Positions 1 to 25,338 of a stretch of DNA of 64,000 bases are shown in pieces. Under the pieces are notes generated by a model that searched no databases, was not told the origin of the DNA, and saw nothing but the letters and a program-made list of their open reading frames with translations. This DNA is from Hyalangium minutum (GTDB lineage: Bacteria > Myxococcota > Myxococcia > Myxococcales > Myxococcaceae), in the NCBI RefSeq assembly GCF_000737315.1, contig NZ_JMCB01000005.1, forward strand, positions 62,001 through 126,000. Reading direction: 5' to 3'. Both the position numbers and the translations under genes were made by a program. Each line of letters opens with the position of its first letter. Position 1 is the stretch's first letter.

Positions 1-1203
1 GGCCTCAACTCCTGGGAGAACGACGCACCTTGGGGTGAGGGCGCTCACATGACGCTCTGCCCGGTGCCGGGCAACCGCATGCTCACCCTGGCGGGCCGCC
101 TGCGCCGGCCGTTCCTTGCCATTGACTTGCGGCTGCAGAGCTACCACTGGATGCACGAGCTCACCAAGCGCGGCGGCAAGATCGAGATCGAGTCCGTCTC
201 CATCGAGCGCCTGGAGCAGATCGCCGCCCAGAATGATCTGACCATCGTGGCCACGGGCCGCGGTGACATGACCAACCTCTTCGAGCGCAACGCCGAGCGC
301 AGCGTCTACGACAAGCCGCAGCGCCACCTGGCCATGGTGTGCGTGAAGGGCCCGCAGATGGGCTTCGACGGCATCCCCATGCTGGGGCTGAAGTACAACG
401 TCCTTGGCCCTCTGGGTGAGGCCTTCTGGATCCCCTACTACCACAAGGATGTGGGGCAGAGCTGGAACCTCGTCTTCGAGGCCCGCCCGGGCAGCGCGAT
501 GGACCGCTTCGAGGGCTGCAAGACGGGTGAGCAGGTGCTCGAGATCGGCAAGCAGGTCGTCAAGGAGTTCGTCCCCTGGGACTACGAGTGGCTCAAGGAC
601 GCCGAGCTGTCGGACTCCTACGGCTGGCAGGTGGGGAAGTTCGCTCCCACGGTTCGCAACCCAGTGGGCCGGCTGCCCTCGGGCCGGCTGGTGGCGGCGG
701 TGGGTGACACGGCCATGTCGCTGGACCCCATCGGGGGCCAGGGCGCCAACAACGGCAACAAGATGGTGCGCAACATGCTCGAGTGCATCGTCGCCCATGA
801 GGATCGGCCCTTCGACGCCCAGTGGATGACGGACACCTTCGAGCGCTTCTGGGCCCGTCACGGGTACTGGACCAGCGTCCACAACAACGGGATGCTGCAG
901 CCGGGCTCGGCCGCCCTGCGCGACCTGCTCTTCGCTCAGTACGGCAGCGATGGCCGCTTCGACAACAACACCGGCGCGCAGCGGCTGGCCAACGCCTACG
1001 TCGAGAACGGCAACGACCCGGCGATGCTCACGCCCACCCTCCAGGATCGGCGCAAGACGCACGAGTTCATCGAGAAGACGACGGGCATCTCGTGGATCCG
1101 CGCCATCGCCAGCGGAGCCATGGGTGTGGCGCGCGAGGAGTTCCGCCAGTGGCGCGGGCTGGAGCCGCGTCACCCGCTCGTGGCCGCGTACAAGGTGGCC
1201 TGA
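1..1203 (+). CDS. StyA-like (styrene/indole monooxygenase family) flavin-dependent monooxygenase, 5' partial
   Basis: Frame is open from base 1 (GLNSWENDAPW...), so the gene starts before the window. Has DLTIVATGRG, the GD motif AVGDTAMSLDPIGGQGANNG and the PTVRNPVGRLPSG segment typical of StyA/IndA oxygenases. Confidence 0.8.
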   Translation, partial: GLNSWENDAPWGEGAHMTLCPVPGNRMLTLAGRLRRPFLAIDLRLQSYHWMHELTKRGGKIEIESVSIERLEQIAAQNDLTIVATGRGDMTNLFERNAERSVYDKPQRHLAMVCVKGPQMGFDGIPMLGLKYNVLGPLGEAFWIPYYHKDVGQSWNLVFEARPGSAMDRFEGCKTGEQVLEIGKQVVKEFVPWDYEWLKDAELSDSYGWQVGKFAPTVRNPVGRLPSGRLVAAVGDTAMSLDPIGGQGANNGNKMVRNMLECIVAHEDRPFDAQWMTDTFERFWARHGYWTSVHNNGMLQPGSAALRDLLFAQYGSDGRFDNNTGAQRLANAYVENGNDPAMLTPTLQDRRKTHEFIEKTTGISWIRAIASGAMGVAREEFRQWRGLEPRHPLVAAYKVA

Positions 1204-1285: not shown

Positions 1286-2740
1286 TTAGCGGAACATCCC
1301 CGGACCCGGCGTCAGCACGGTGTCTGGGTCGTAGCGCCGCTTGGCGGCCGCCAGGTTCTCCCAGGCCGGGCCGAAGCGCGCTCGCCACTCCTCGGGAGAC
1401 AGCGTGAGGGCGGCGTGCGCGTAGTGCGTCCCCTCCCACTTCCGGTTGCGCTCGTAGAGCTCGCGGTTGTGCTGCACCATCTGCGGCACGCTGCGCTTGG
1501 CTCCTGGCGCCGCGGTCCGGAGCACACCGAACAGGAAGGAGATGTCCTCCCCCGGCGGCAGGCTGAACAGCGGGCGGGTGATGCGGCTGCGCTTGAGCAG
1601 ATAGAAGAGGACCGGGAAGTAGAAGTCCACCTCGGTGGGGGACACCTCTCGGAGCACCTCCGCGGCGAACGCGTCGAGCTTCGAGTCCGGGACGAAGAGA
1701 TCGCTCCAGGGGTGGGGCAGCGAGTACATGCCGTTCTGCCGCAGCTCCGCCAGCTGCGGAGCGAGCCGGCTCACCCACGTGGGGTACGGCAGGTCGGAGA
1801 TCGACTCGGAGCCCTGCTGGTACGACAGGCCCTTCAGCACCTGCGCATCGTCGGGACGCGACGGCTCCTTGTAGTACTGGAGGACCTGCATCCGGTGCAT
1901 CCAGCCCGTGCCGCTCCGCTCCGGCAGCGCGAAGCCCAGCACGTAGTCGATGCGCTCGTTCTCCACGGCCAGGCGCTGGTCCCGCAGCTGGGCCTCGAGG
2001 TTCGGGTAGCCCAGGTCATACAGGCGCACGTGCGTCGGCGCCTCCACCAGCTTGAGGGTGGCGCGGGTGATGACACCACACTGCCCGAGCCCCGCGAGCA
2101 CCGCCTCGAACAAGTCTTTGTTCTGCGTGGGAGAGCAGTGCACCAGCTCGCCCTCGCCCGTTACCACCTGAAGCTCCAGCACATGGTCGATCTGCAGACC
2201 TTGGCGGAAGGTGTTGCCGCTCAAGCCACCCACCGACAGGGTGCCGCCCACCGTCAGCTCCAGCAGGTCCGTGAGCACGGGCGGGGTCCGGTTGATGGCG
2301 AGCGCCCGCTCCACCACCACGCTCCAGAGGATGCCGGCATCCACGTCGATCCGATCCTCGGAGACGGAGTGCACGGCGTTCAGCGAGCGCATGTCGATGA
2401 CGATGCCCGCCTCCACCTGCGACTGGCCGTTGATCACATGCCCATTGCCGCGAGGGCCGATCTTGAGCCGGTGCTGCCGGGCGAAGCGGATCATCTGCGC
2501 AATGTCGTCGGCTGACTGGGGGCGGAGCACGGCCAGGGGCAGGCGGCTCACCATGTGCCCGAAGTCATCCGCCACTTCCGCTCGCGCTTGCGGCGAGGCG
2601 AGCAGCACTCCCTTCAGCTTCGGGAGGGGTTCAACGCCTGGGGCCGTGCCCCCCTGAGAGACCCAGCTGCGGCCGGCCGGATGAAAGCCGATGACCGCAT
2701 CCTGGGGAGAGGGATTGGAACTCGGGGGGGCGAGGCTCAC
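1286..2740 (-). CDS. VAO/PCMH-family FAD-linked oxidoreductase, cytokinin dehydrogenase-like
   Basis: PLAVLRPQSADDIA, RGNGHVINGQ (covalent-FAD His), LTVGGTLSVGG, AVLAGLGQCGVIT, and C-terminal KRRYDPDTVLTPG. Confidence 0.8.
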   Translation of the reverse strand: MSLAPPSSNPSPQDAVIGFHPAGRSWVSQGGTAPGVEPLPKLKGVLLASPQARAEVADDFGHMVSRLPLAVLRPQSADDIAQMIRFARQHRLKIGPRGNGHVINGQSQVEAGIVIDMRSLNAVHSVSEDRIDVDAGILWSVVVERALAINRTPPVLTDLLELTVGGTLSVGGLSGNTFRQGLQIDHVLELQVVTGEGELVHCSPTQNKDLFEAVLAGLGQCGVITRATLKLVEAPTHVRLYDLGYPNLEAQLRDQRLAVENERIDYVLGFALPERSGTGWMHRMQVLQYYKEPSRPDDAQVLKGLSYQQGSESISDLPYPTWVSRLAPQLAELRQNGMYSLPHPWSDLFVPDSKLDAFAAEVLREVSPTEVDFYFPVLFYLLKRSRITRPLFSLPPGEDISFLFGVLRTAAPGAKRSVPQMVQHNRELYERNRKWEGTHYAHAALTLSPEEWRARFGPAWENLAAAKRRYDPDTVLTPGPGMFR

Positions 2741-2761: not shown

Positions 2762-3367
2762 CTACTTCCAGGTGATGCTGTAGGTGCAGGCCGGGGCGCC
2801 CTTCTTGCGGCACGTCTTCGGATCATGCATGACCTTCGCGCCGGCGTTGAACTGCTGGCCCAGGCCCGTGACCAGGCCCTCCTCGAAGGCGCAGGGGTAC
2901 GGGGTGTCGGCGTCGACGAACACCTGCGTCTTGCCCGGCACGGTGCGGACCTTGTAGTGGCCGATGCCCTCGAGCATCTGGCCCGTCTGCGGATCGAACA
3001 TCCGCTTCCCGCTCTTGGCGTGGTTGTAGTGGTAGCCCATGTCCAGCGTCTCGAACGCGCGGGCGATACCCGTCAGGAAGTCACCCGGCTGCGAGGCCTT
3101 CTTCACGATGTAGAGGCCCGACTGCTTCAGGGTGTAGTCCCCGAACTCCGCCTGCACGCGATCGAACGCGCGCAAGAAGGCGTCCAGCGGGTACCACTTC
3201 TCCGGATCCAGCTTGGCCATGCCGACGCCATCGGTGTCCATCTCTCCCAGGCCGCACTCGAGCAGGATCTTGCTGGCCAGCAGAGTGAAGGAGCCGAACC
3301 CGTCCAGCGTCACCTGCACCGTCGAGCCGAGAGTCTGGTATTCCTTGTAGTTCTCACTATTGGGCAT
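2762..3367 (-). CDS. Stand-alone V4R-like (4-vinyl reductase fold) small-molecule-binding protein
   Basis: YPCAFEEG...HDPKTCRKKGAPACTYSITW resembles the V4R Cys pattern. RBS AGGGGG precedes the ATG. Confidence 0.55.
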   Translation of the reverse strand: MPNSENYKEYQTLGSTVQVTLDGFGSFTLLASKILLECGLGEMDTDGVGMAKLDPEKWYPLDAFLRAFDRVQAEFGDYTLKQSGLYIVKKASQPGDFLTGIARAFETLDMGYHYNHAKSGKRMFDPQTGQMLEGIGHYKVRTVPGKTQVFVDADTPYPCAFEEGLVTGLGQQFNAGAKVMHDPKTCRKKGAPACTYSITWK

Positions 3368-3605
3368 GATGATCCCCCTGTTGATTCAGCGTACGAAATG
3401 AAGTGATGACGTGAAGAGCCGGAAATCGGCGTGTACTCCAGCACGGGTCTTGCGGTGATTCAAGTACTGCTCCTGCCCGTGTCCGATACCTGTAGTGAGT
3501 GGCGATGAGACACCGCGCGGGTGTGATCGGCTCTGTCGGGCAGGTGAACTTGCGGCACATGTACTAGAGGGAAGCCACGGCTGTTGGCGTGACCAGGAGA
3601 AGCAC

Positions 3606-5012
3606 ATGAGTTCGTCTGAAGATCTTCCGTTGGAGTTGCAAACGCTGGCCGAGCCCTACCGCGTGAAGATGGTGGAGAAGGTCCGCATTCCGTCTCGCTC
3701 CGAGCGCGAGAGCATCTTGAAGAAGGCCCACTACTCCGTGGTGCACGTGGACTCGGCGGACATCTTCATCGATGTGATCACCGACAGTGGCACGGGCGCG
3801 ATGAGCGACCAGCAGTGGGCGGGGCTGATGAAGGGCGACGAGGCGTACATGCGCTCGCGCAGCTTCATCGAGTTCGAGCGGGCCGTGCAGGACATCCTTG
3901 GCTTCGAGCACGTCATCCCCACACACCAGGGGCGTGCGGCCGAGCACATCCTCATGGAGCTGCTCATCAAGCCGGAGGACGGTAAGGACATCGTCCTGTG
4001 CAACACGCACTTCGACACGACGCGCGCGCACGTGATGAACCGCAAGGCCACCCCGCTGGATCTGGTGGGGGACTGGCTCTGGCGCTTCGAGGAGGAGCGG
4101 CCCTTCAAGGGGAACTTTGATCTGGGCAAGCTCGAGGCCGCCCTGGAGCGCTATCACCAGCGCGTCCCGTTCGTCCTCATCACCGTGCTCAACAACTTCG
4201 CGTGTTCCTCGCCGGTGTCCATGGAGAACATCCGCGAGACGAAGCGGCTCGCGGACCGCTACAACATCCCCATCTACTTCGACATCTGCCGCTTCGCGGA
4301 GAACGCCTACTTCATCAAGACGCGCGAGAAGGGCTACCAGGACAAGTCCATCGCGGAGATCGCCCGGGAGATGCTCTCCTACGGGCGAGGCTGCTGGATG
4401 AGCGCGAAGAAGGACGGCCTGGTGAACATCGGCGGCTTCATCGCGGTGCACGACGAGAAGCTCGCGATGCGGTGCAAGGAGAAGCTGGTGCTCTACGAGG
4501 GCTTCCCGACCTATGGCGGTCTGGCGGGCCGAGACCTGGAGGCGGTGGCCGTGGGCCTGCGCGAGGGCATCGAGGAGCCCTACCTGGCCCACCGCACGCA
4601 GCAGATCGCCTACCTGGCGGACCTGTTCGAGAAGACCGGCATCCGCGTGAGCAAGCCCTCGGGAGGCTCGGGCGTCTTCATCGACGTGGCGGGGCTCTAC
4701 TCGCACCTGCCGGAGGACAAGTTCCCGGCGATCGCCTTCACGTGCGATCTCTACCTGGAGGGCGCCATCCGTGGCAGCGCCTATCCGTTCCCGCTCATCA
4801 CCATTGATCCGAAGACGGCCGACATCACCCCGCGCGTCTTCCAGTTCGCCCGCTTCGCCATTCCCCGGCGCACCTATACCAAGGGGCACCTGGACTACAT
4901 CGCCACGGTGATGGCGCGGCTGAAGGAGAAGGCGCCGCAGAACAAGGGCTACAAGATCACCTACTCACCCGAGGTGCTGGGGCACTTCTTCTCGAAGTTC
5001 GAGCCCCTGTAG
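3606..5012 (+). CDS. tnaA: Tryptophanase / tyrosine phenol-lyase family PLP beta-eliminating lyase, closer to tryptophanase
   Basis: EPYRVKMVE, TDSGT, GDEAY, THQGR, MSAKKDGLVNIGG (PLP Lys), YEGFPTYGGLAGRD, RFAIPRRTY. The HFDTT Asp and C-terminal HF are tryptophanase-type residues. Start moved to ATG 3606 after RBS AGGAGA. Confidence 0.8.
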   Translation: MSSSEDLPLELQTLAEPYRVKMVEKVRIPSRSERESILKKAHYSVVHVDSADIFIDVITDSGTGAMSDQQWAGLMKGDEAYMRSRSFIEFERAVQDILGFEHVIPTHQGRAAEHILMELLIKPEDGKDIVLCNTHFDTTRAHVMNRKATPLDLVGDWLWRFEEERPFKGNFDLGKLEAALERYHQRVPFVLITVLNNFACSSPVSMENIRETKRLADRYNIPIYFDICRFAENAYFIKTREKGYQDKSIAEIAREMLSYGRGCWMSAKKDGLVNIGGFIAVHDEKLAMRCKEKLVLYEGFPTYGGLAGRDLEAVAVGLREGIEEPYLAHRTQQIAYLADLFEKTGIRVSKPSGGSGVFIDVAGLYSHLPEDKFPAIAFTCDLYLEGAIRGSAYPFPLITIDPKTADITPRVFQFARFAIPRRTYTKGHLDYIATVMARLKEKAPQNKGYKITYSPEVLGHFFSKFEPL

Positions 5013-5031
5013 CACCCAGGGCTGGCGCCGC

Positions 5032-6846
5032 TCAGACGATGGCGCGGTTGAACTCCCGCCTGGCCGTGCCGACCAAGAGCGGCTGCGGCTGGGGGGACAC
5101 TTCCTGGTGCGCGCTGAGGCCGTAGGCCTCGGTGGCCAGGTAGATGGTGGTCCGCAGCTGGCTTCCCTGCCGGCGCATGGAGGCCCACTGCATCAATCCC
5201 ACGCCCGTGTCGAGCCGGCGGTGCGCCAGTGCCCGCACCGCCCGCTCCAGCAGCATGTGGGCTTGCGGATCCAGCAGGAAGCGGATGCGCTCCAGGGCCT
5301 CCTGGTCATTGCGCACGTGGCAGCGCACGGGGACGTGCAGCGTGACGCTGGTGGGTCGATCCTCATCCGAGGTGAACGACAGGCACGTCAGCAGCGAGCG
5401 CGAGGACTCGACGCGGCCGGTGTGGCCCTTGAGCGCCTGGCAGAAGATCCACGCCTCGCCGGGCACGTACTCCGGTGCCAGCGCCATCACCGACTCGAGC
5501 TCCTCCGCGGTGATGTCCTTGTGCGCCAGGTAGATCTTCACGCGGGCCGTGCGGTGAGCGGACAGGTCCAGCGAGAAGTAGATGATCTGATCCAGCCCGT
5601 CCGGACGCAGGGTGTGCTCGCTGAGGCAGCGCCAGACGCGGTGCAGGCCCAGCCGCTCCAGGGCCTCCTGCACCACCGCGTGGGCCCGCTCGGGGCCCTG
5701 GGCCGCGGGGTTGAAGTAGACCTTGATGTCGGCCCGGCCGTTCTTGAGGAAGAAGGCGTGCCAGAGCGCGAAGCGGGCGCGGGGATCCACCGGCTCGAAC
5801 AGATCCTTCACGAGGTTGAAGCGCTCCAGCCGGACGCCGAACTCCTGGCTCAGCCGCTCGGTGAGGGCAATGCCGTCTTCCCAGGTGGAGCGCAGCGTGG
5901 TGGGGCCGTGGGCGCTCTGGGACTCCATCAAGAAGCGCACCTCGGGCCGTCCGTCCTCGAGCGCCAGGGACAGCTCGTACGGCGTGTGGTCGTCGGTGAT
6001 GTCCGACTTCCAGGGCGGGGTGGAGCCGATCTGCTGGGAGCCCCAGGGACTGCTCATGAAGCTGAAGAAGCGCTTCACCGTCTCTGTGTCCGAGGCGTCG
6101 TAGCCCACCGCCTCGCAGAGCGCCTGCAGGCGGGCAATGCCGAACTCCTCGAAGGTCAGGGAGGAGGGTGGCTCCCACGCGATCAGCGCCCGCTTCACCT
6201 CCAACTGGTGCAGCGCGTACGCCAGCAGGTGGTTGCTCAGGCCCATGAGGTGGCTGAAGACCTCATCCACGGTCTCCAGGGCCTCCTTCTCTGAACCCGG
6301 CGGAAGCTGCTGGCCCGCGGTGGCCCAGCACGAGGCTCCCTCCAGCTGCGCGCGCAGGAACCGGAAACCCACCAGTTCCTTGCCCGTGCGCGCCTCGAAC
6401 GTGCGGGCCACGTGCTCGAGCGCTCCCAGGCCCATGCTCCCCGCCGTGTGGAGCGCCCGCATCAGGATCTGCGCCTGGACCGGGCTCGCGTTCGCCGCCA
6501 CATCAATGAGCTCGAAGAGCGTCTTGCGAGTGAAGCTGCCCTCCGCTCCCCACAGCAGCCGCAGCATGCCGTTGAGGTCCGAGGTGGAGCTCAGCCCCAG
6601 CATCTGCAGATCGCTCAGATAAGCGGCCCAGTGCGCACTCTCCTGGGGGTTCTCCGGGACGAGCTCGGGCTCCTCCCCCATCATCGTGCGGTTCAGGTCC
6701 GCCAAGCCCAGCACGAGCGGCGCCAGACAGGGCAGGAAGCTCAGACGTTCCTGGGGCGAGAGGCGTGTATCCCGGAGGAAGCCCACGAAAGAAGACCTGG
6801 CGAAGATCTGCTGCCGCTCTCTCAAATGCTCCAGGACCTGCTGCAT
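5032..6846 (-). CDS. Tryptophan dimethylallyltransferase (DMATS/ABBA indole prenyltransferase) with an N-terminal degenerate heme-oxygenase-like (AetD-like) domain
   Basis: C-terminal ~380 aa: SDITDDHTPYELS, VRFLME, IKVYFNP, YFSLDL..RVKIY, TIYLA (DMATS diphosphate-binding K/R/Y residues). N-terminal ~210 aa helical: FLRDTRLSPQERLSFLPCLAP..DLNR, ESAHW..LSDLQMLG. Confidence 0.8.
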   Translation of the reverse strand: MQQVLEHLRERQQIFARSSFVGFLRDTRLSPQERLSFLPCLAPLVLGLADLNRTMMGEEPELVPENPQESAHWAAYLSDLQMLGLSSTSDLNGMLRLLWGAEGSFTRKTLFELIDVAANASPVQAQILMRALHTAGSMGLGALEHVARTFEARTGKELVGFRFLRAQLEGASCWATAGQQLPPGSEKEALETVDEVFSHLMGLSNHLLAYALHQLEVKRALIAWEPPSSLTFEEFGIARLQALCEAVGYDASDTETVKRFFSFMSSPWGSQQIGSTPPWKSDITDDHTPYELSLALEDGRPEVRFLMESQSAHGPTTLRSTWEDGIALTERLSQEFGVRLERFNLVKDLFEPVDPRARFALWHAFFLKNGRADIKVYFNPAAQGPERAHAVVQEALERLGLHRVWRCLSEHTLRPDGLDQIIYFSLDLSAHRTARVKIYLAHKDITAEELESVMALAPEYVPGEAWIFCQALKGHTGRVESSRSLLTCLSFTSDEDRPTSVTLHVPVRCHVRNDQEALERIRFLLDPQAHMLLERAVRALAHRRLDTGVGLMQWASMRRQGSQLRTTIYLATEAYGLSAHQEVSPQPQPLLVGTARREFNRAIV

Positions 6847-7307
6847 CGGTTTTGCTCCTCGACTGGACTGGTCAAGACCCAGCGCCCGGGCTTCTGGGCT
6901 CGCTGCTGTGATTCGGTAACCCCCCAGAATTTGGCAATCAATGAGGGGTGATTCAGACCCGCCCCATCGACTTCCGACAGGTGTGGTTGTAACGCATTTT
7001 TTTTATTCGGGTCAAATAGAATGGGTAAAAAATCTCTACCCTGCGAGATTCTTTGGCAAGTGGGAGTGTGTTGATCTCTTAGGTTTTCAGTCCTGGCAAA
7101 AAACACGCAACATTTTCCCCGGGTGGGTGAGGAATGACTCACATGCGGAAAATGACCCAGGTGGGATGAACAGCCATCTCGGCCTGGAGACTGAGAGAAA
7201 AAGGACTACCCAGAAGGTTCTATCTGGGATTGATCGGATAGCGGGGCTCTGGATCGAGGCGTGATCCAGGCCTCAACAGGGCAGGAGCAACCGGGGCTGT
7301 GGGTGGG

Positions 7308-7652
7308 TCAGTTCAGCCAGCGCGGCACGCCGGACTCGGGGGACTGCTCCTCCGAGAGCCAGGCGATGGAGAGCTCATCGCCCAGGGCCGTGTCGAAGTT
7401 CGCGGCGATGACATATCCCGCAGGCGTGGCCTGGCAGCGGAGGATGTTCAGCCGCGTCCGAGGGATGAGCAGCTCGGGGATGCTGGCCTCGATGGATTGC
7501 CCGGGCTCTACGGGCACGCGAGACAGCAACAGGCAGCCGCTGGCCGAGGCATTGATGATGTCCGCGTCCAGCACTTCACGGGGGCAGTGGAGCTTGATGG
7601 CCAGCCGCAAGGGGTACCGTTGGTGCCGACGCCGCTCGTTGTCGTAGGACAC
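7308..7652 (-). CDS. Stand-alone PilZ-domain protein
   Basis: GTG start after AGGAGG; RRHQR (RxxxR) and NASASG (NxSxxG) c-di-GMP motifs. The upstream part of the 496-aa ORF is an antisense shadow of the DUF1684 gene. Confidence 0.8.
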   Translation of the reverse strand: MSYDNERRRHQRYPLRLAIKLHCPREVLDADIINASASGCLLLSRVPVEPGQSIEASIPELLIPRTRLNILRCQATPAGYVIAANFDTALGDELSIAWLSEEQSPESGVPRWLN

Positions 7653-7865
7653 GGGATGCCTCCTGACGCGCTGCCCGTCATCCACGGCGGGACATGAGGT
7701 GAAACAATATGCGGGTTTCATACCGAGAGGCAGCCCTTGCGGCTTGTCTACATCGGCATGCAATGTGTTGCATGGGGTTGACAGGTGAGCAAAAGAAGGG
7801 TTTTTGTTTTCAATGTGTGTCTTTGAAGTCCCGCAGATACATTTAGGGGAAGGCGGGGCCCTGAC

Positions 7866-8801
7866 ATGGTGGTCCTCATGAAATGGAGCTCCCTGTTGTT
7901 GGTGTCCCTGGGCCTTGCTGCTCCAGTGAGCGCTGCGCCCCCATCCACCCCCAAACCTTCCACCCCGCCCATGAATGCCTCTCCTGGAATCGAAGCCGAG
8001 ACCCGTGCCTGGCACACCGAACGCGTCTCCCGGCTGACGTCGGACGATGGGTGGCTCACGCTGGTGGGGCTGCATTGGCTCAAGGAGGGCGCCAACCGCT
8101 TTGGCTCTGCGCCGGACAATGACGTGGTGTTCCCGGCGGCCTTTCCCGCTCATGCGGGCACCTTCACCCGGAAGGGAGCCACGGTGAGCCTCGCGCTCGA
8201 GAAGGGCACGTCCCTGGCGCTGGAGGGCAAGCCCTTCACCGGAGGCGCGCTGCGCAGTGATGCCGACGGCAAGCCGGACACGCTGGCGCTGGGCTCCGTG
8301 CGCTTCTTCGTGATTCGCCGCGGCGATCGGCTGGGCGTGCGGGTGAAGGACTCGGAGGCGCCCACGCGCAAGGCGTTCCACGGCATCCCCACCTACGCCC
8401 CAAGCGCCGCCTGGCGGGTGGAGGGGCGCTTCGAGCCCGCCACCACCGAGAAGAAGATCTCCGTTCCCAATGTGCTGGGCGAGGTGGAGGAGATGGTGTC
8501 CCCGGGCACCGTCGTCTTCACCGTGGGAGGTCAGGAGTACCGGCTCTCGCCGGTGCAGGAGCCGGGCGAGGATCAGCTCTTCTTCATCTTCGGAGACCTG
8601 ACCAACCGCGATGAGACGTACGGCGCGGGCCGCTTCCTGTACGCAGCCATGCCGAAGGAGGGGAAGGTGGTGCTGGACTTCAACCGGGCCTACAACCCGC
8701 CGTGCGCGTTCACCTCGTTCGCCACCTGCCCGCTGCCGCCGTCGCAGAACCGGCTCAAGGTGCGGGTCGAGGCCGGAGAGAAGCGCTACGGCGACCACTG
8801 A
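7866..8801 (+). CDS. DUF1684-family exported protein
   Basis: Signal peptide (start may be ATG 7878); GWLTLVGLHWL, TYGAGRFL, LDFNRAYNPPCAFTSFATCPLPP..N.L...VEAGEK. Confidence 0.85.
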   Translation: MVVLMKWSSLLLVSLGLAAPVSAAPPSTPKPSTPPMNASPGIEAETRAWHTERVSRLTSDDGWLTLVGLHWLKEGANRFGSAPDNDVVFPAAFPAHAGTFTRKGATVSLALEKGTSLALEGKPFTGGALRSDADGKPDTLALGSVRFFVIRRGDRLGVRVKDSEAPTRKAFHGIPTYAPSAAWRVEGRFEPATTEKKISVPNVLGEVEEMVSPGTVVFTVGGQEYRLSPVQEPGEDQLFFIFGDLTNRDETYGAGRFLYAAMPKEGKVVLDFNRAYNPPCAFTSFATCPLPPSQNRLKVRVEAGEKRYGDH

Positions 8802-9947: not shown

Positions 9948-10114
9948 TCAGGGCTCCTGCGACGCGTGGGGTCCGAGCCCGTCAAGGATGCCATGGGGTG
10001 GGTGGATCCGCTGGGTGAGGCATGTGCCTACACAGTGAAGGTGCGGCCAAACAAGCGTGCTTTGGGGAAATTAAGAGCTTGAGCGAGGGGTATCGGAGCG
10101 CGACAGTTCTGATC

Positions 10115-13100
10115 ATGGAACAGGGGCGGCGCGCGACAGACCGGAAAGCCGTAGGTCTGCTGGTGAAGCTCAAGCACTCGGATGTGGGGAGCTTCGCAGA
10201 GGAGTTCGCCACCAACTTGAGCCCTGGCGGCATGTTCATTCGCACGCGTACACCGCAGGCGGTGGGCACGCTTGTGAAGTTCGAGGTGCAGATTGCCGGC
10301 GGCGTCCGCGTGCTGCGCGGCACGGCCGTGGTGCGCTGGGTGCGCGAGACGACCAACGAGGAAGGCCCTCCGGGCATGGGGCTCCAGTTCCAGGAACTGG
10401 ACCCGGTCACCCAGTCGCTCATCGATCGGATGCTGCAGCTCAGCAAGGCGGCCGCTTCAGCGGGTGGGGCCGCGGCGGCGGGGGACAAACCCTCCGTGGA
10501 CGTGGAGGCGCTGGAGCGGGAGATGCTGGCCAAGGGCATGCTGGACCGGGTCGGCAAGCGCATCACCGCCTCGCGCCTGCCTGCCATCGCGCCCTCCGTT
10601 GCCCCGGTCTCCCGAACGGCGCCCAAGCAGGGCCCCGGTGCGAAGCGCCAGGCCGAGGAGCTCCCCTCGGGCCCGATGCTGACCGATGAGCGGCTGGAGG
10701 AGAGCGCCGATCTGGGCGACCTCATGGACGATCTCGAGTCGATGGGCTCGCAGATCGGCAAGCCCGGCAAGCCGCCCGTGTACTCGGTGCACACGGCTCC
10801 CACGCCCGTGCCCCTGGCCGTGCCCCCTCCCGGCGAAGATGACGTGAACATCGCCGTCGATGACCTGCTTTTGGTCACCCCGGAGTCTGCTTCCGCGTCC
10901 TCCGAGGTGAAGTTCGAGGTCGTCGACGAGCCCATGCCCGACATCGACTTCGAGATGGAGTCGTTGGGCGGGGATCTGCCCGTGGCCGTGGGCATGGCGC
11001 TGGAGGACGCCGAGGTGGCCCCCGTCCTTCAGGGCCAGCCCGTGCCTCCTCCTCCTCCGGCTGCACCCGCTCGTCCTGCGGCTCCGCTGCCGCCCGTGGC
11101 GAAGGCCTACCCTGCCGTAGCGCCGCAGCCTGCTCCCTCTGTGCAGGCTGCTCCGCCCCCGCCCCCGGTCTCCGCCGCGCCCCAGGTCCCGCCGCCCGCT
11201 CCGCCGCCTCCGGCCGCTCCGCCGCCTCCTCCGGCCGCCGCGGCTCCTCCAGCTCCGCTCAAGCCTGCGTTCGACGTGGATGTCGAGCTGGGCCTCATTG
11301 GCCCCAAGCTGGTGAACCAGTCGGACTCGCCGGACTTCAAGCCTGGCAAGGGCGTGGAGTTCGAGCTGAACCTCGGAAGCGGCGAGGACATCGACGTCGA
11401 CAAGCCGGGTCAGAAGCCTCGGCGCAAGCCTCCCAACCGCGCGCCGCCGCTCCCTGCCGCTACGCCTCCGTCTTCAGGGCCCGCGCCCTCGGCTCCTCGT
11501 TCGTTCCCCGCGGGGGCGCCCGAGGCTCGTGCGGAGGCGCCGCGTCCCGCTGCGCCCGTTCCCGGGAGCGCTGCCGCGCCTGCGCCCGCGCCTCCCCGGC
11601 CGCCGGTTCCCGAGGCTCCCCCCAAGATGGTCTTCCCGCCGACCGTCTTCCTGCATCCGCCCGAGCCAGTGGTGGGCACGGGGCCGGTGATAGGCATCGA
11701 TCTGGGCACCACCAACTCGTGCGTGGCCATCATGACGGGGGGCCGTCCCCAGGTGTTGCGCTCGAAGGAGGGCTACAACACCATCCCCTCGGTCATCTCG
11801 ATCAGCTCGCAGGGCAAGCTGCTCGTGAGCCACCGGGCCAAGAGCCAGCTCGTCATGCGCCCCACGCAGACGGTCTACGGCGCGAAGCGCATTGTCGGCC
11901 GTCCCTATGAGAGCGCCGTGGTGAAGCAGGTCCGCGAGCGCTTCCACTACGAGATCGTCCCCGACGCGCTGGGCCGTGCCGCCGTGCGCGTGGCCGACAA
12001 GGTGCTCTCGCTGGAGGAGGTGCAGGGCCTCATCCTCAAGGAGTGCAAGGAGATGGCTGAGCAGCACCTCGGCCAGAAGGTGGAGCGGGCGGTGGTGACG
12101 GTGCCCGCCTACTACTCCGAGCCGCAGCGCGAGGCCGTGCGCAAGTCCGGCGCCCTGGCGGGCCTGAAGGTCGAGCGCATCCTCAACGAGCCCACCTCCG
12201 CGGCGCTGGCCTACGGCCTCAACCGCGAGATGGACAAGCGGGTGCTGGTCTACGACCTGGGCGGCGGTACCTTCGACGCGACCATCCTGCGCATCGAGAA
12301 GAACGTCTTCGAGGTGCTGGCCACCGGCGGTGACATCTTCCTGGGCGGTCTCGACCTCGACAACGCCATCGTCGACTTCCTGCTGGAGCGCTTCCAGCAG
12401 CTGGAGAACGTGCCCTTCCAGGGAGACGGCGTGGCCCTGTCGCGCGTGAGTGACGCGGCCGAGAAGGCGAAGATCGCCCTCTCCGAGCGCCAGCACTACG
12501 AGGTCCATATCCCGATGCTGATGATGGACGAGATCGGCCGACCGAGGGACCTCAACTTCACGATGACGCGCGCGGACCTGGAGCGCATCTGCGAGAGCCT
12601 GGTGTCGCGCACGCTGGATGTGGTGCGGGACGTGCTGCTGGACGCGCGGCTGAAGCCCAGCGACATCGACGACATCATCCTCGTGGGCGGTCAGGCGCGC
12701 ATGCCGCTGGTGCGCGAGAAGATCAAATCGCTGTTCGGCAAGTCGGCGCACTCGAGCGTGAACGCGGACGAGGCGGTGGCGCTGGGCGCGGCGCTGTACT
12801 CGACGGCGATCGACAAGGTGAGCAGCGTGGTGCTCATCGACGTGCTGCCGATGACGATCGGTCTGGCGATGCCGGGCGGCTCGTTCCAGCGCGTCATCGA
12901 GCGCAACACCCCGCTGCCGGCGCAGCGCTCGTTCGCGGTGGCGACCTCCCGGGACGACGAGGAGGTGCTGGAGCTGTCCATCTTCCAAGGAGAGGACAAC
13001 CACATCTCCGCCAACGAATACCTGGGCACCGTGCGGCTGGAGGGACTGCCGAAGGGCCCGAAGGGCTCGGTGCGCGTGGCGGTGACGATCAAGCTGGACG

Positions 13101-13315
13101 CGGAGTGTGTGCTCTACGTCGAGGCCCGGGAGTACCAGACGCGCAAGACGGTGCGGGCGACGCTGGCCACGCGGTACACGCCGGAGGAGTTGGCCCAACA
13201 GCTCAAGGTGGACGCGAACGCGGCGCGCGCAGCCGAGGAGCGCCGGGGCGCGGATCTGCGCGAGCGCGCGGGCCGCTTCTGGGGCTTCCTCAAGAAGGTG
13301 GTGGGCCGGTCCTGA
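10115..13315 (+). CDS. PilZ (TIGR02266-type)-Pro/Ala linker-Hsp70/DnaK fusion protein
   Basis: N-terminal RATDR...NLSPGGMFI PilZ; Hsp70 motifs GIDLGTTNS, TVPAYY, NEPTSAALAYG, VYDLGGGTFD, VGGQARMP, linker VVLIDVLP; short lid. Start placed at ATG 10115. Confidence 0.85.
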   Translation: MEQGRRATDRKAVGLLVKLKHSDVGSFAEEFATNLSPGGMFIRTRTPQAVGTLVKFEVQIAGGVRVLRGTAVVRWVRETTNEEGPPGMGLQFQELDPVTQSLIDRMLQLSKAAASAGGAAAAGDKPSVDVEALEREMLAKGMLDRVGKRITASRLPAIAPSVAPVSRTAPKQGPGAKRQAEELPSGPMLTDERLEESADLGDLMDDLESMGSQIGKPGKPPVYSVHTAPTPVPLAVPPPGEDDVNIAVDDLLLVTPESASASSEVKFEVVDEPMPDIDFEMESLGGDLPVAVGMALEDAEVAPVLQGQPVPPPPPAAPARPAAPLPPVAKAYPAVAPQPAPSVQAAPPPPPVSAAPQVPPPAPPPPAAPPPPPAAAAPPAPLKPAFDVDVELGLIGPKLVNQSDSPDFKPGKGVEFELNLGSGEDIDVDKPGQKPRRKPPNRAPPLPAATPPSSGPAPSAPRSFPAGAPEARAEAPRPAAPVPGSAAAPAPAPPRPPVPEAPPKMVFPPTVFLHPPEPVVGTGPVIGIDLGTTNSCVAIMTGGRPQVLRSKEGYNTIPSVISISSQGKLLVSHRAKSQLVMRPTQTVYGAKRIVGRPYESAVVKQVRERFHYEIVPDALGRAAVRVADKVLSLEEVQGLILKECKEMAEQHLGQKVERAVVTVPAYYSEPQREAVRKSGALAGLKVERILNEPTSAALAYGLNREMDKRVLVYDLGGGTFDATILRIEKNVFEVLATGGDIFLGGLDLDNAIVDFLLERFQQLENVPFQGDGVALSRVSDAAEKAKIALSERQHYEVHIPMLMMDEIGRPRDLNFTMTRADLERICESLVSRTLDVVRDVLLDARLKPSDIDDIILVGGQARMPLVREKIKSLFGKSAHSSVNADEAVALGAALYSTAIDKVSSVVLIDVLPMTIGLAMPGGSFQRVIERNTPLPAQRSFAVATSRDDEEVLELSIFQGEDNHISANEYLGTVRLEGLPKGPKGSVRVAVTIKLDAECVLYVEAREYQTRKTVRATLATRYTPEELAQQLKVDANAARAAEERRGADLRERAGRFWGFLKKVVGRS
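11030..11650 (+). repeat. Low-complexity Pro/Ala-rich coding linker
   Basis: Runs such as PPPPPAAPARPAAP and PPPAPPPPAAPPPPPAAAAPPAP; imperfect CCG/CCT/GCT repeats. Confidence 0.8.
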
Positions 13316-13361: not shown

Positions 13362-15044
13362 ATGTCGCGTCTCCCTGCCTCGCTGATCCTCCTCGCCATG
13401 ACCGGGGCCTGTGGCTCGGGCTCTGGTGGCGGTCCTGGTCCTTCGAATCCCGGGACGACTCCGAACACTCCTGCGGTCGAGATTACTCCGGCGGCGGGGG
13501 ACGAGTGGTATCGCAAGGCCGTCTTCTACGAGGTCTTCGTCCGGAGCTTCCAGGACTCGAATGGAGACGGGAAGGGGGACCTGAAGGGCCTCCTGTCGCG
13601 CCTGGACTATCTCAACGACGGCGATCCGAACACGACGCAGGACCTGGGCGTGGATGCGCTGTGGCTCATGCCCATCTTCGAGTCGCCGAGCTACCACGGC
13701 TATGACGTGGTGGACTACGAGCGCATCGAGCCGGACTACGGCACCCTGGAGGACTTCGAGCTGCTGTGCGTCGAGGCCCACAAACGGGGGATGCGCGTCA
13801 TCCTCGACTTCGTGATCAACCACTCGGGGGTAGGGCACCCGTGGTTCGTGGAGTCCGCCTCGTCGCCCACGTCGGCAAAGCGCGGCTGGTACGTGTGGAA
13901 GGATCAGGATCCGGGCTGGAAGCAGCCATGGAGCCAGTTCTCGAACACCCCCACGTGGCACAAGCGCAACGGCGCCTACTACTACGGCGTGTTCTGGGAC
14001 GGGATGCCGGACCTGAACATGCAGAACGCGGAGCTGCGCGCGGAGGTGAAGCGCCTGGCCTCGCTGTGGCTCGAGCGCGGCGCGGATGGCTTTCGGCTGG
14101 ATGCCGCGCGCTACCTCATCGAGACGGGGGCGGGCGCGGGCCAGGCGGACACTCCGGAGACGCACGCCTTCTGGAAGGAGTTCGCCGCGCACGTGCGGCA
14201 GGCCAAGCCGGACGCGGTGCTGGTGGGGGAGAACTGGAGCACCACGCCCATTGTCGCCACCTATTACGGCTCGACGGCGAAGGTGCCGGGTGGCGACGAG
14301 CTGCCGCTCAACTTCAACTTCGGTATCTCCGAGCAGATCCTCGCGGGGCTCAATGGCAACAATGCGGCGCCCATCGCGGCGAAGCTGGCGGAGATGGCGC
14401 GCGTATACCCGGCAGGGGTGAGCGATGCGCCCTTCCTCACGAACCACGACATGGTGCGGCTGTCCACGCAGCTCAGTGGGAACGCGGGCAAGCTGGCCAA
14501 TGCGGCGGCGCTGCTGCTCACCCTGCCTGGGGCTCCCTTCCTCTATTATGGAGAGGAGCTGGGAATGTCGAACGGTGGCGAGAACAACGACGAGTCCAAG
14601 CGCACGCCGATGCCCTGGAACGGCACGGCGGGAGGTGGCTTCACCACGGGGACGCCCTGGTACAGCTTCTCGGGGGGGTACACGTCGGGGCGCAACGTGG
14701 CTGCCCAGGAGAACGCTGCGGGCTCGTTGTTGTCGCGCTACCGGGCGCTGATCCGGGCGCGCCATGCCTCGGAGGCGCTGAGCCGCGGGGGACTCAAGCT
14801 CCTCTCGTCGACGCAGGGGACTCAGGTCATGCTCTCCTTCGTGCGCACGCTGGGCGAGGAGCGGGTGCTGGTGGTGCACAACGTCACGGACTACAACGTG
14901 TCCGCGGGCCCGTTCGACCTGCCGGGTACCACGCCCGAGATTCTCTTCGCCGACAGCAACGTCTCCGCGCTCACGAAGACCGCCACCGGTTGGCAGGCGA
15001 GCCTGCCGCCTCGCACCACGGGCATCTGGCGCCTGAAGCCGTGA
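13362..15044 (+). CDS. GH13 alpha-amylase lipoprotein (GH13_36-like)
   Basis: Lipobox ..MTGAC; DSNGDGKGDL, YHGYDV, catalytic triad in GFRLDAARY / GENW / TNHD. Confidence 0.9.
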   Translation: MSRLPASLILLAMTGACGSGSGGGPGPSNPGTTPNTPAVEITPAAGDEWYRKAVFYEVFVRSFQDSNGDGKGDLKGLLSRLDYLNDGDPNTTQDLGVDALWLMPIFESPSYHGYDVVDYERIEPDYGTLEDFELLCVEAHKRGMRVILDFVINHSGVGHPWFVESASSPTSAKRGWYVWKDQDPGWKQPWSQFSNTPTWHKRNGAYYYGVFWDGMPDLNMQNAELRAEVKRLASLWLERGADGFRLDAARYLIETGAGAGQADTPETHAFWKEFAAHVRQAKPDAVLVGENWSTTPIVATYYGSTAKVPGGDELPLNFNFGISEQILAGLNGNNAAPIAAKLAEMARVYPAGVSDAPFLTNHDMVRLSTQLSGNAGKLANAAALLLTLPGAPFLYYGEELGMSNGGENNDESKRTPMPWNGTAGGGFTTGTPWYSFSGGYTSGRNVAAQENAAGSLLSRYRALIRARHASEALSRGGLKLLSSTQGTQVMLSFVRTLGEERVLVVHNVTDYNVSAGPFDLPGTTPEILFADSNVSALTKTATGWQASLPPRTTGIWRLKP

Positions 15045-15076
15045 AGTTGCCAGTTGCGGGGTGCTACATTTTGGGC

Positions 15077-15880
15077 ATGTCCCGCATCTGGCTCGTGCTC
15101 GTCTTGGTGTGTGCCCTGGCTCCACTGCAGGGAAGCGCCCAGAGTTCGCCGCCGCCGCTGGTCCCGTCGGCTCCCGAGGAGGACCCATATGATCCCAAGG
15201 GAGGCCCTACCAGCAGCGATCCCTATGGTGGCTACGATGACGAGCCAGCGCCCAGACGGAGCTCCGCTGACGGCGAGGAAAAGCCCAAGGAAGAGATCAT
15301 CCCCCATAAAGGGACGTCCTCGAGAGGCTCGAGGGCAAACAATGGGCGCGTCATCGGCGAGGCCGTGGTGGGGGGGCTGTTTGGGGTAGCGGGGGCCGTG
15401 CCGGGCTTGCTGATGATGTCAGAGCTCTGCCTGACAAGTGACTGTGACGACAGCGTCAACTCCCAGTTTTTCACGGGCATGGCGTTGGCCTTCACAGGAT
15501 GGACGCTGGGCTCGGGGCTCGGCATCGTGGTGGGAGGCAGCCTTGCCGGAGGCGAGGGTGACTTTCTGGCAACGCTGGGGGGATCTGCCTTGGGAGCGTT
15601 GGTGGGAGTGGGCGGGAGCCTGGCCACCCTCGGGCTCTCCCTGGCGCTGCATTCGGTCAGTGAGGGGCTCGGGATCCTGGCGCTCGTCATCACAGTGCCA
15701 CTCGTGAGCCTTCCCCTCCTCGTCTTGGGCCCCCTTGTGGGTGGAATCCGTTTCTACGAGAGCTCCCACGAGAGCGCCGTTGCACAACAGCAAGGGGCCA
15801 GCGCCAGTGTGCGGATGGTTCCGGTCATCAGCGTGAGCCCCTCGGGCGGGCTCGTCGCGGGGCTCATGGGGCGGTTCTGA
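15077..15880 (+). CDS. Exported/membrane hypothetical protein with Gly-rich hydrophobic helices
   Basis: ATG 15077 MSRIWLVLVLVCALAP signal, acidic Pro-rich linker, GxxxG-rich helices, ends GLVAGLMGRF. It is the 3' part of the listed 704-aa ORF. Confidence 0.65.
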   Translation: MSRIWLVLVLVCALAPLQGSAQSSPPPLVPSAPEEDPYDPKGGPTSSDPYGGYDDEPAPRRSSADGEEKPKEEIIPHKGTSSRGSRANNGRVIGEAVVGGLFGVAGAVPGLLMMSELCLTSDCDDSVNSQFFTGMALAFTGWTLGSGLGIVVGGSLAGGEGDFLATLGGSALGALVGVGGSLATLGLSLALHSVSEGLGILALVITVPLVSLPLLVLGPLVGGIRFYESSHESAVAQQQGASASVRMVPVISVSPSGGLVAGLMGRF

Positions 15881-15881
15881 A

Positions 15882-16832
15882 TCAGTGCACGGGCACCACT
15901 GCGGGCCATGGAGGCGGGTTCGGCCCGAGCACCTGCTCCTGCGTCACTCCCTCCGGCACCACCAGGTCCACCACCGGTGACTGGTTCGCCGCTCCCAACC
16001 TCCCTCCACCAAAAAACTCCTTCGAATCTCCCGGCACGATGGGCAGCACCATGGACGCTCTGGGGCCCTCCTTCCCGAACAGCGAGGACAGGTTCACCTT
16101 GTTCTCGAACAGAGCCCCTGTCACCGCGAGCGCGTAGCCCCACTCCGGCCGAGGCGCGCCGCCAAAGAAGTCGTTCGGCACGAAGAACTCCACCGTCGCC
16201 CCTGTCACGCGCACGCGCGTGGGGAAGAACACCTGCCCCGTCAGCTTGCGCTCCACCTCCGACTCCACCTCGCGCTGCGCGGCCTCGCCCAGGGAGCCTT
16301 GCTGGCGGATCCGCTCCTCGCGCTCCTCCCGTTGCCACTCTCCGCGCAGCTGGTCCCGCGCGTCATACGGCCGAGGCGTGAGCACGATGGCTTTCTCCCA
16401 CGCGCTCCCCGGAGCCAGCGAGAGGTTCCGCCCCGGCAGCGTCTCCGTGCGGCCCGAGCCCTCCACCCGATCCGTATCCACGTACAGGTCCAGGTTGAAC
16501 GTGTAGAACCCGAGCCGCGCCTTCTGCGCCTGCGTCTCTCCGGCGATGTCCACCGTCCGCGCCGCCTGGGGCTTCGCGATGGGCCGCGCGAAGGTCGCCT
16601 CGAACCGCGTGCCGTCATCCTCCGGGTACGCCACCAACAACAGCAGATCCATTGAGCCCGGCCCCAGGTCCTCGCGCAGCGGATAGCGCAAGTCCCCATC
16701 TCCGTGGTCATCCCCGCGCGGATCCGCCAGGGTGAAGAGCGGGGCAGTCCCTCCGGTGCTCCGGGAGAGGCACGCGCTGGCCAGCACGGCCCCCAGCGCG
16801 AGCGGCAGCAGGGCGCGGCGAAGCGGAAGCAT
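15882..16832 (-). CDS. Glucodextranase C-terminal DOMON-like domain lipoprotein
   Basis: Lipobox VLASAC; DPRGDDHGDGDLRYP, MDLL, NLDLYVDTD, WEKAIV, WGYALAVTG. ATG 16832 follows GGAG. Confidence 0.7.
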   Translation of the reverse strand: MLPLRRALLPLALGAVLASACLSRSTGGTAPLFTLADPRGDDHGDGDLRYPLREDLGPGSMDLLLLVAYPEDDGTRFEATFARPIAKPQAARTVDIAGETQAQKARLGFYTFNLDLYVDTDRVEGSGRTETLPGRNLSLAPGSAWEKAIVLTPRPYDARDQLRGEWQREEREERIRQQGSLGEAAQREVESEVERKLTGQVFFPTRVRVTGATVEFFVPNDFFGGAPRPEWGYALAVTGALFENKVNLSSLFGKEGPRASMVLPIVPGDSKEFFGGGRLGAANQSPVVDLVVPEGVTQEQVLGPNPPPWPAVVPVH

Positions 16833-16849
16833 CAACGAGACTCCGTGGG

Positions 16850-16887
16850 AAAAAAGAGAGCCCGGCGAGCGTCGCCGCGCGCCGGGC
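16850..16887 (-). terminator. Rho-independent terminator after the outer-membrane protein gene
   Basis: On the minus strand, GCCCGGCG-loop-CGCCGGGC followed by TCTCTTTTTT. Confidence 0.7.
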
Positions 16888-16915
16888 CCTTCTCAAGCAA
16901 GAAGCGTGAGGCTGA

Positions 16916-19108: not shown

Positions 19109-19140
19109 GATGTGAACCCCTCCTCCAGGGCCAGACGGCA

Positions 19141-19164
19141 CCGCGGGGAAGACAGCCCCCGCGG
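19141..19164. other. Intergenic 8-bp GC stem-loop inside the operon
   Basis: CCGCGGGG-AAGACAGC-CCCCGCGG between the DOMON gene stop (19200) and the OM gene start (19108). Confidence 0.5.
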
Positions 19165-19199
19165 CGGTCCAGCCAAGTCCTTAGTGAATCGGTACCGCG

Positions 19200-20012: not shown

Positions 20013-20037
20013 TGACGGCTCTCCTTGGGAAACAACA

Positions 20038-24243: not shown

Positions 24244-25338
<1,095 letters not shown>

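Follow-up and report, generated by a model that had tools for sequence, protein, structure and literature searches.

The stretch of DNA analysed here, hereafter the window, comprises 64,000 nucleotides of the genome of the myxobacterium Hyalangium minutum (contig NZ_JMCB01000005.1, positions 62,001 to 126,000). Its minus strand encodes a 604-aa fusion protein, in which a domain related to the tryptophan (Trp)-rearranging oxidase AetD—a heme-oxygenase-like diiron oxidase (HDO)—precedes a DMATS-type aromatic prenyltransferase (Table 1). The N-terminus of the open reading frame (ORF), MQQVLEHLRERQQIFARSSF, is the same as the peptide quoted in a first-pass annotation of the window. With a GC content at third codon positions (GC3) of 0.92, the fusion gene is typical of genuine genes in this window of 68% GC, and a ribosome-binding site (GAGGAG) lies 8 nt 5' of the ATG at position 6846. 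A scan of positions 4900-7900 returned no sigma-70-like promoter and terminator-like matches at chance level. Public records name the fusion proteins only ‘tryptophan dimethylallyltransferase family protein’, leaving the AetD-like N-terminal domain currently invisible to annotation; aa 1-213 have no significant match to a Pfam or NCBIfam family. PF21476, considered as the identity of this domain, was rejected as noise (E=0.024, 15 bits vs a cutoff of 33).

Table 1 Features of the fusion gene and its cluster in the window (positions are those of the window)
Feature	Position	Strand	Basis
Fusion gene, AetD-like HDO domain then DMATS prenyltransferase, 604 aa	5032..6846	-	ORF listing; two-domain PDB matches
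AetD-family heme-oxygenase-like domain, degenerate diiron site, aa 1-223	6178..6846	-	Family HMM, AetD match, AF2, Foldseek
Inter-domain linker, aa 224-235, ending ...AWEPPSSLTFEEF	6142..6177	-	Between HDO HMM end (aa 223) and DMATS match starts (aa 233-240)
DMATS-type aromatic prenyltransferase domain, aa 236-604	5032..6141	-	PDB and PF11991 matches, invariant residues
Codons E69-S70-A71-H72, carboxylate-xx-His motif of core helix 1 (AetD D76 and H79)	6631..6642	-	Alignments
Codon H133, at the position of AetD Fe2 ligand E140	6448..6450	-	Alignments
Codons R165-S172 (RAQLEGAS), remnant of core helix 3 HxxxExxH	6331..6354	-	Alignments
Tryptophanase (beta-eliminating lyase)	3606..5012	+	NF009709, 587 bits; PF01212
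Conserved 201-aa protein, function-unassigned, cluster member in both paralogous clades	2762..3367	-	Homologues beside fusion
FAD-linked oxidase, FAD_binding_4 and cytokinin-dehydrogenase-type C-terminal domain	1286..2740	-	PF01565, PF09265
StyA-like (styrene/indole monooxygenase type) flavin monooxygenase, 5' end cut by window edge	1..1203	+	PF17885; NF045732 from model position 84
Small PilZ-domain gene, approximate start	7308..7652	-	RRRHQR...DADIINASASG matches PilZ motifs

Searching all PDB chains with phmmer split the fusion protein into two parts, with aa 1-170 matching AetD (8JI2, 8TWN; E=4e-17, identity about 25%) and aa 233-585 matching bacterial DMATS enzymes. A hidden Markov model (HMM) built from 99 stand-alone family members of 225-270 aa aligned to aa 1-223 over model positions 1-232 (E=6e-47); this span means that the domain has diverged versions of the third core helix and of the C-terminal helices. 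The first-pass annotation had placed the domain at 6207-6846, which covers aa 1-213 with the right peptide, and the family HMM extends it to aa 223, ahead of a linker that is kept in the relatives. Its proposal of an AetD-like HDO domain fused ahead of a DMATS enzyme was borne out by the PDB, HMM and Pfam matches, and the motifs it quoted are all present (ESAHW, aa 69-73; RALHTAG, aa 130-136; FLRAQLEG, aa 163-170).

The structural similarity to AetD by which that annotation had proposed to check the domain was found as well. An AlphaFold 2 (AF2) model of the N-terminal domain, computed from a 47-sequence alignment, reached a predicted local distance difference test score (pLDDT) of 89.6 and a predicted template modelling score (pTM) of 0.86; a single-sequence prediction of all 604 aa (pLDDT 38.8) was not used. 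When the model was compared to the PDB using Foldseek, ranks 1-21 were all AetD (template modelling (TM) score 0.73-0.79, about 0.77; E about 1e-8), followed by TenA, UndA, heme oxygenase, CADD and BesC at TM scores of about 0.5-0.65. The model shows the N-terminal domain, as predicted, to retain the seven-helix heme-oxygenase-like fold.

These comparisons show the N-terminal 223 residues to be paralogous to two diiron oxidases that rearrange tryptophan: AetD, the nitrile synthase of aetokthonotoxin biosynthesis (PDB 8JI2-8JI7, 8TWN, 8TWT, 8TWW), and SktA, a homologous skatole synthase. Both are recent additions to the HDOs, and other homologues are function-unassigned, according to the paper on SktA. 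What the window domain has in common with them is homologous sequence, the seven-helix HDO fold, a set of motifs and residues (F.RD...SP..RL, PC.A, (D/E)xxHW, D86, W106, R114) and a place within a tryptophan-modifying cluster. Its differences are a loop ahead of core helix 1 that is shorter by about 7 residues, the covalent fusion to a DMATS enzyme, and a host that is myxobacterial rather than cyanobacterial; neither AetD nor SktA chemistry is expected of the window domain.

The C-terminal 370 residues were shown to be a functional-looking DMATS-type tryptophan/indole prenyltransferase, judging from database matches and residue conservation. In the PDB they matched 6zry (E=6e-51), PriB (4e-44) and 6-DMATS 7w8u (1e-43), and the solved structures nearest to them are those of tryptophan DMATS enzymes from actinobacteria, 7w8u included. 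PF11991 scored 63.8 bits vs a cutoff of 25, and TIGR03429 of NCBIfam scored 122.8 bits, under its curated cutoff of 163.85. An alignment of 13 sequences—the window protein and 12 stand-alone DMATS enzymes, down to 31% identity—revealed the family-invariant residues to be present: E291 (TPYELS), R304, K375/Y377 (KVYFNP), R435/K437/Y439 (RVKIY), R558 and Y569. We take these to play the roles assigned in FgaPT2, namely catalytic Glu, diphosphate-binding basic residues and Tyr shield.

Degeneration of the diiron site

The iron ligands of AetD come from three helices: core helix 1 supplies D76 and H79, helix 2 supplies E140, and helix 3 supplies H172, E176 and H179. The carboxylate of the substrate is hydrogen-bonded by Y167, with F44, F48 and I146 packing against the indole (PMC11611611; PMC10654658). 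The enzyme is a homodimer formed via helices alpha4a/alpha4b (PMC11611611; PMC10654658). Iron-free AetD still binds its substrate, the amino-acid moiety being hydrogen-bonded to H79 and H172 and also to Y167 (PMC11611611).

HMM alignment placed E69, H72, H133, R165, E169 and S172 of the window protein in the six ligand columns, meaning that three of the six canonical diiron ligands are kept (E69, H72, E169). In core helix 1, ESAHW preserves the carboxylate-xx-His motif of AetD D76-x-x-H79. Within RALHTAG, E137 and E140 of AetD correspond to R130 and H133, and in the FLRAQLEG region H172 is replaced by R165 and H179 by S172. The first-pass annotation had called the later ligands lost; this holds for E140, H172 and H179, but not for the bridging Glu of HxxxExxH, E176, which is kept as E169. 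The pocket columns are occupied by Gly at Y167, Leu at both F44 and F48, and Gly at I146, so that the AetD substrate contacts are missing, as is the 3-His/3-carboxylate diiron set of the AetD/SktA family.

Because exchanging any Fe-coordinating residue of AetD for Ala abolishes activity (PMC10654658), AetD-type diiron catalysis by the window domain appears very unlikely. A fully active bifunctional protein, uniting a nitrile (or skatole) synthase of the AetD diiron type with a prenyltransferase, would sit well with the genuine homology and fold similarity to AetD, and such proteins probably exist among the relatives (C-terminal fusions and P0243 below, with 6/6 ligands). The effect of single Ala swaps, set beside Arg at H172, Ser at H179, His at E140 and Gly at Y167, leaves this possibility next to no likelihood in the window protein.

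We then looked at relatives, referred to below by locus (L) and protein (P) numbers. Word-indexed homologue searches returned one relative for the N-terminal domain alone and, with the family alignment as query, mostly cyanobacterial stand-alone proteins, missing the fusions. The family was exposed by exhaustively scanning 1.84 billion representatives, which yielded 177 family clusters at E <= 1e-3, and by a search seeded with P0006, a fusion of reverse domain order, which added about 40 further proteins of 603-618 aa. A scan of GTDB species genomes recovered eight loci, all from Hyalangium and related Myxococcaceae, with two paralogues per genome. The corresponding paralogous clades share 65-76% (clade A) and 49-51% (clade B) identity with the window protein. 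A neighbor-joining (NJ) tree computed from 214 domains unites the degenerate N-terminal ones in a single clade, whose sister group includes an intact AetD homologue encoded beside a clade-B fusion.

None of the 43 distinct full-length domains in this clade retains five or six canonical ligands; four are found in six of them, three in 16, two in 15, one in five and none in a single sequence. All six are kept by 128 of 153 stand-alone homologues and by 11/11 C-terminal (DMATS-AetD) fusions. Thus, the degeneracy of the diiron ligand set that the first-pass annotation had noted holds for the window protein and all 43 clade members. Residue counts by column, drawn from 46 distinct N-terminal fusion sequences, revealed Arg at H172 in 31/46 and His at H79 in 31/46 (Y, N, S, Q, V or C in 12/46). 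The D76 column contains E (29) or D (7), and the E140 column—E in 96% of intact homologues—contains H (18), E (11), Q (7), K (6) and also Y or R. At H179, P or A prevail; at E176, the clade has D, E, Q, A, M or K; and at Y167 it has S, C or G, the Tyr being lost throughout. A replacement set of His, Cys or carboxylate residues conserved across the clade was not found, and since no His other than H72 (70%) is conserved, no relocated metal site is visible. These distributions show the loss of the 3-His/3-carboxylate site, and of the Tyr that holds the substrate carboxylate, to date to the common ancestor of the Hyalangium/Myxococcaceae clade.

An alternative is that E69, H72, H133 and E169 form a mononuclear or unusual site, in which case the N-terminal domain would still be a metalloenzyme, catalysing a different oxidation of Trp or prenyl-Trp within a bifunctional protein. 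All four potential ligands persist in the window protein, L007, P0002, P0219, P0230 and P0233 (E/D, H, H, R, E/D), dN/dS below 1 (see below) shows that the domain matters, and there are known single-iron enzymes of the HDO fold that have lost ligands of helix 3, such as HamA and FlcD (PMC13108848, PMC12522199). However, every ligand column, the four positions included, is variable even among close relatives (for instance Y and F in P0232, Q in P0223). Moreover, Lys in the E140 column and Arg in the H172 column fit a metal swapped for a charged side chain, and Tyr167 is lost throughout. We regard a surviving metalloenzyme as improbable. Precedent for this fold without a diiron cofactor comes from TenA thiaminase II, PqqC (metal-free or single-metal), mononuclear HamA and FlcD; unlike in these, to which there is no sequence kinship beyond the fold, the catalytic residues are not a conserved set in the window domain.

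The ratio of non-synonymous to synonymous substitution rates (dN/dS) of the N-terminal vs the DMATS domain was 0.26 vs 0.11 for window and L012, 0.30 vs 0.07 for L005 and L006, and 0.48 vs 0.19 for L004 and L005. Only close pairs were used, distant ones being unreliable: their dS was about 0.4-0.7 even at about 40% aa identity, a plateau that we read as saturation in GC3-rich genes (GC3 about 0.9). The N-terminal domain is hence under purifying selection, 2-4 times more relaxed than that on the DMATS domain. Positions S18, R34, L35, L38, P43, G47, W73, D79, L80, W99, R107 and F197 are invariant in the clade, and the clade-specific conserved residues L85, D90, L97, L98 and G100 fall within the segment that matches the AetD dimer interface (helix 4a/4b).

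Neutral drift of a functionless remnant, left over from a once bifunctional AetD-DMATS enzyme, would agree with the faster non-synonymous evolution relative to the DMATS domain and with the variability of all catalytic residues. Yet, dN/dS of 0.26-0.48 is clearly below 1, and the 43 distinct sequences from two paralogous clades keep their full length, without truncation, and share many invariant positions. A single disrupted copy was seen, the frameshifted L001, and we deem neutral drift very improbable. At L001 (726-2553; ENA ERZ25039574 contig_74254), the orthologous fusion is split over two frames (aa 1-410 and aa 314-591), owing to pseudogenisation or to a fault in the assembly, and this accounts for the truncated 326-aa protein P0001.

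Intact relatives and the surrounding gene cluster

The first-pass annotation had pointed to homologues with intact ligands as worth seeking, and these exist, mostly in DMATS-AetD order. In Archangium gephyra (L011 8001-9799, CP011509), the genes for a 357-aa DMATS enzyme and for a 242-aa AetD homologue in which no ligand is missing (307 bits) overlap by 4 bp. In Archangium lipolyticum (L010 8001-9827), the two are joined in the 608-aa DMATS-AetD fusion P0006, adjoining a DIOX_N-type dioxygenase gene. From their sequences, both the A. gephyra pair and the A. lipolyticum fusion probably act bifunctionally, with prenyl-indole nitriles or skatoles as their products. The same order recurs in P0195-P0197, P0070 and P0036 and in a second group consisting of P0257, P0259, P0262, P0264, P0279 and P0282. 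Besides the six ligands, the 11 full-length fusions of this order all have Y167 and F48, and the whole set recurs in P0036, the N-terminus of which is incomplete. An AetD-DMATS fusion with 6/6 ligands, P0243, was also found; it groups with the second C-terminal group and not with the degenerate clade.

In the NJ tree, the fusions represent independent events. AetD-type enzymes are thus recurrently coupled to Trp prenyltransferases in myxobacteria, by way of an overlapping operon, both fusion orders and several independent fusions. These intact pairs and fusions show that DMATS enzymes and AetD-type HDOs work together, and the intact fusions are probably real bifunctional enzymes; the products to be expected from the coupling are nitriles, skatoles or aldehydes of prenylated indoles. 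The intact pairs belong to the same two families and the same Myxococcaceae DMATS subclade as the window protein (50-57% DMATS identity). They differ by their 6/6 ligands, Tyr167 and Phe48, whereas the window clade has a dead site and an order opposite to most of them.

Further domain combinations were observed in the same families. Two tandem AetD-like proteins, P0109 (535 aa) and P0148 (533 aa), have all six ligands in their first domain and D76 -> L, E176 -> H and H179 -> E or L in the second, and may be a natural analogue of a heterodimer. Two other kinds of DMATS fusion are represented by P0255, P0261, P0265, P0277, P0290, P0292, P0293 and P0295: one in which DMATS is fused C-terminally to a different HDO family (PF14518, iron-containing redox enzyme), and one in fungi (Microdochium, Metarhizium) in which a tryptophanase precedes it, in proteins of about 920-990 aa.

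The tryptophanase gene of the window is convergent with the fusion gene, with 20 bp between their ends. Within the listed ORF 3495-5012, its translation probably begins at M38, and orthologues in L012 and L014 measure 466-468 aa. A tryptophanase adjoins the fusion in 6/6 clade-A loci (window, L002, L007, L008, L012, L014). The cluster for aetokthonotoxin (AETX) likewise encodes a tryptophanase, AetE. A six-frame HMM search of the 64-kb window retrieved no stand-alone AetD homologue. That the AETX cluster contains a tryptophanase is stated in the paper on SktA.

A DMATS gene together with a tryptophanase gene is the hallmark of the ‘Type A’ prenylindole clusters of actinomycetes, which encode the 6-dimethylallylindole-3-carbaldehyde pathway (PMC3617294). 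The same arrangement was found in the window, where the tryptophanase lies beside a DMATS gene of the same subfamily as in the clusters with the 6-DMATS IptA (7w8u, 5inj, 6zry; E of 1e-43 or better). ‘Type B’ clusters pair the 5-DMATS SCO7467 with the flavin monooxygenase (FMO) SCO7468, and flavin monooxygenases are present in the window cluster too. In contrast to the actinomycete DMATS enzymes, which are single-domain proteins of about 360-400 aa, that of the window is preceded by a 235-aa HDO-derived domain. The flavoenzymes of the window also differ, being of the StyA type and of the VAO/cytokinin-dehydrogenase type, and the cluster adds the conserved 201-aa protein.

Homologues of this 201-aa protein adjoin the fusion in L002, L003, L004, L007, L008, L012, L014 and L016. 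It matched no Pfam or NCBIfam family. A profile of five sequences gave weak matches to the C-terminal third of structures of H-NOX, a nitric oxide-binding heme sensor (E=0.025-0.06), and one family member weakly matches DUF2378. Invariant His, Cys and Tyr residues abound in it, including H116, H137, H181, C159, C186 and C194. Presence of the FAD oxidase gene is variable: the window, L012 and L014 have it and L002, L007 and L008 lack it, a cytochrome P450 gene occupying the corresponding position in L002. Cytokinin dehydrogenases cleave N-isopentenyl groups, and by analogy a prenyl-directed oxidation by the FAD oxidase of the cluster is conceivable. Orthologues of the StyA-like monooxygenase have 461-463 aa in L012 and L014, the latter with a second StyA-like gene.

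The nearest relatives of the window locus, L012 (fusion domains 95-97% identical) and L014, contain the same genes in similar order, and L002, L007 and L008 share the fusion, tryptophanase, 201-aa protein and StyA genes with it. In clade B, a tryptophanase is missing from L003, L004 and L016, which instead encode an intact stand-alone AetD homologue along with the 201-aa protein and StyA; some clade-B loci add cytochromes P450 or a halogenase-like flavoprotein. In L016, from Hyalangium rubrum (11167-11901, 13803-15242), the degenerate fusion occurs together with an intact AetD homologue, a StyA-like protein and a flavoprotein with faint Trp-halogenase matches, a combination reminiscent of the cyanobacterial skt and aet clusters.

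Possible roles of the degenerate domain

An HDO domain devoid of its metal site, fused to a DMATS enzyme and conserved as a clade, is new as a variant; both families and DMATS-tryptophanase clusters were already known. In open-access papers and bioRxiv preprints, we found none that ties AetD/HDO enzymes to prenyltransferases or describes an HDO pseudo-enzyme, nor one describing the present architecture, in agreement with the first-pass statement that it was not known as characterised. On indiacen biosynthesis, the same sources held nothing relevant. With its metal site lost and the domain still under selection, the clade is a candidate pseudo-enzyme in a superfamily for which no described example was found.

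We give about even odds to the fusion protein being an active prenyltransferase with a non-catalytic, AetD-derived domain for binding and/or docking. According to this proposal, the N-terminal domain would no longer oxidise anything and would serve as a metal-free binding and/or docking module. Its pocket would now present H72 and the conserved Arg R165 where iron-free AetD binds the amino-acid moiety of Trp via H79 and H172, and R165 could hold the alpha-carboxylate directly. By analogy with the substrate binding of iron-free AetD, and with H172 turned into a conserved Arg, metal-free binding seems plausible. The same two points would lend indirect support to the Trp-binding, allosteric or channelling module that the first-pass annotation had suggested. 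The domain would thereby keep Trp or prenyl-Trp beside the prenyltransferase and/or tether the latter to itself or to the next enzyme, a suggestion we make because the helix-4 segment, the dimer interface in AetD, is strongly conserved and carries clade-specific residues. The DMATS domain would prenylate L-Trp; the adjacent tryptophanase, as the next enzyme here, would cut prenyl-Trp to prenylindole; and the StyA-like monooxygenase(s) and FAD oxidase would then oxidise the prenylindole. In paralogous clade B, an intact stand-alone AetD homologue would take the place of the tryptophanase.

More specifically, the HDO-derived module might have a positive function of one of two kinds. It could act as a metal-free receptor for Trp or prenyl-Trp, with Arg165 standing in for Fe1, that gates the prenyltransferase or hands on its product. 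Alternatively, it could be a pseudo-subunit and use the AetD dimer interface to pair with a different partner or with an AetD homologue that is intact. We put this forward tentatively, as a possibility on the doubtful side. If true, the HDO superfamily would have its first described pseudo-enzyme, and a diiron oxidase would have been naturally recycled as a substrate-handling domain.

Docking is argued from the dimeric state of AetD, the conserved interface segment, the intact AetD neighbours in clade B and the tandem proteins P0109 and P0148. The same observations would suit a purely architectural domain, which without any small ligand serves oligomerisation or as a scaffold via the AetD dimer interface, either dimerising the prenyltransferase or docking a partner: few parts are as well conserved as the interface segment, and conservation of the pocket-lining residues is poor. 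However, clade-A clusters, including the window within its 64 kb, lack a stand-alone AetD homologue, and the conserved Arg at the H172 position, along with the kept H72 and E69 in the pocket, would be needless for a mere scaffold. We therefore consider a solely architectural role somewhat unlikely.

Several points weigh against an active prenyltransferase with a binding or docking domain. That role is one we infer from sequence. The indole-clamping pocket of AetD is poorly kept in the clade—F48 corresponds to F, S, L or A, I146 mostly to Ser or Gly, and Y167 is lost—and Trp may consequently not be the ligand. E69, H72, H133 and E169 amount to four potential metal ligands in the window protein, and mononuclear-iron HDOs are known. 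The alignment supplied to AF2 consisted mostly of intact AetD homologues, so that the model leans to the AetD fold, and the NJ tree is without support values. Finally, the copies in L005, L006 and L015 stand as orphans amid housekeeping genes, and a neighbouring partner gene is thus not obligatory. A natural comparison for the role of the dead domain is offered by the two cluster types, the Trp side chain being likely processed by a tryptophanase in one and by an intact AetD homologue in the other.

Flanking genes

The PilZ gene shares the strand of the fusion and lies upstream of it, at a distance of about 460 nt (about 400-460 nt across loci); its product has RxxxR and DxSxxG-like motifs. 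A PilZ gene of 101-114 aa is found at the same place in both clades, at 586-930 in L012, 7235-7579 in L014 and 7518-7823 in L016, which hints at a partner or regulator of the cluster linked to cyclic di-GMP. Beyond the cluster, the flanks common to the window and L002, L007 and L008 comprise genes for DUF1684, a membrane protein, PilZ-Hsp70 and amylase that are 79-94% identical, a similarity that by itself assigns the window to a Hyalangium-like myxobacterium. The PilZ-Hsp70 gene (10022-13315, plus strand) encodes a 1097-aa protein with an N-terminal PilZ domain and a full Hsp70/DnaK-type ATPase; it is found in the syntenic Hyalangium loci L002, L007, L008 and L014, with the Hsp70 part 90-94% identical. 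The remaining left half of the window (13362-31398) is a housekeeping locus for starch/maltodextrin utilisation that has no relation to the fusion protein. It encodes a 1170-aa pullulanase, a MalEFGK-type ABC transporter and two GH13 amylases, along with glucodextranase-like SLH-type modules.

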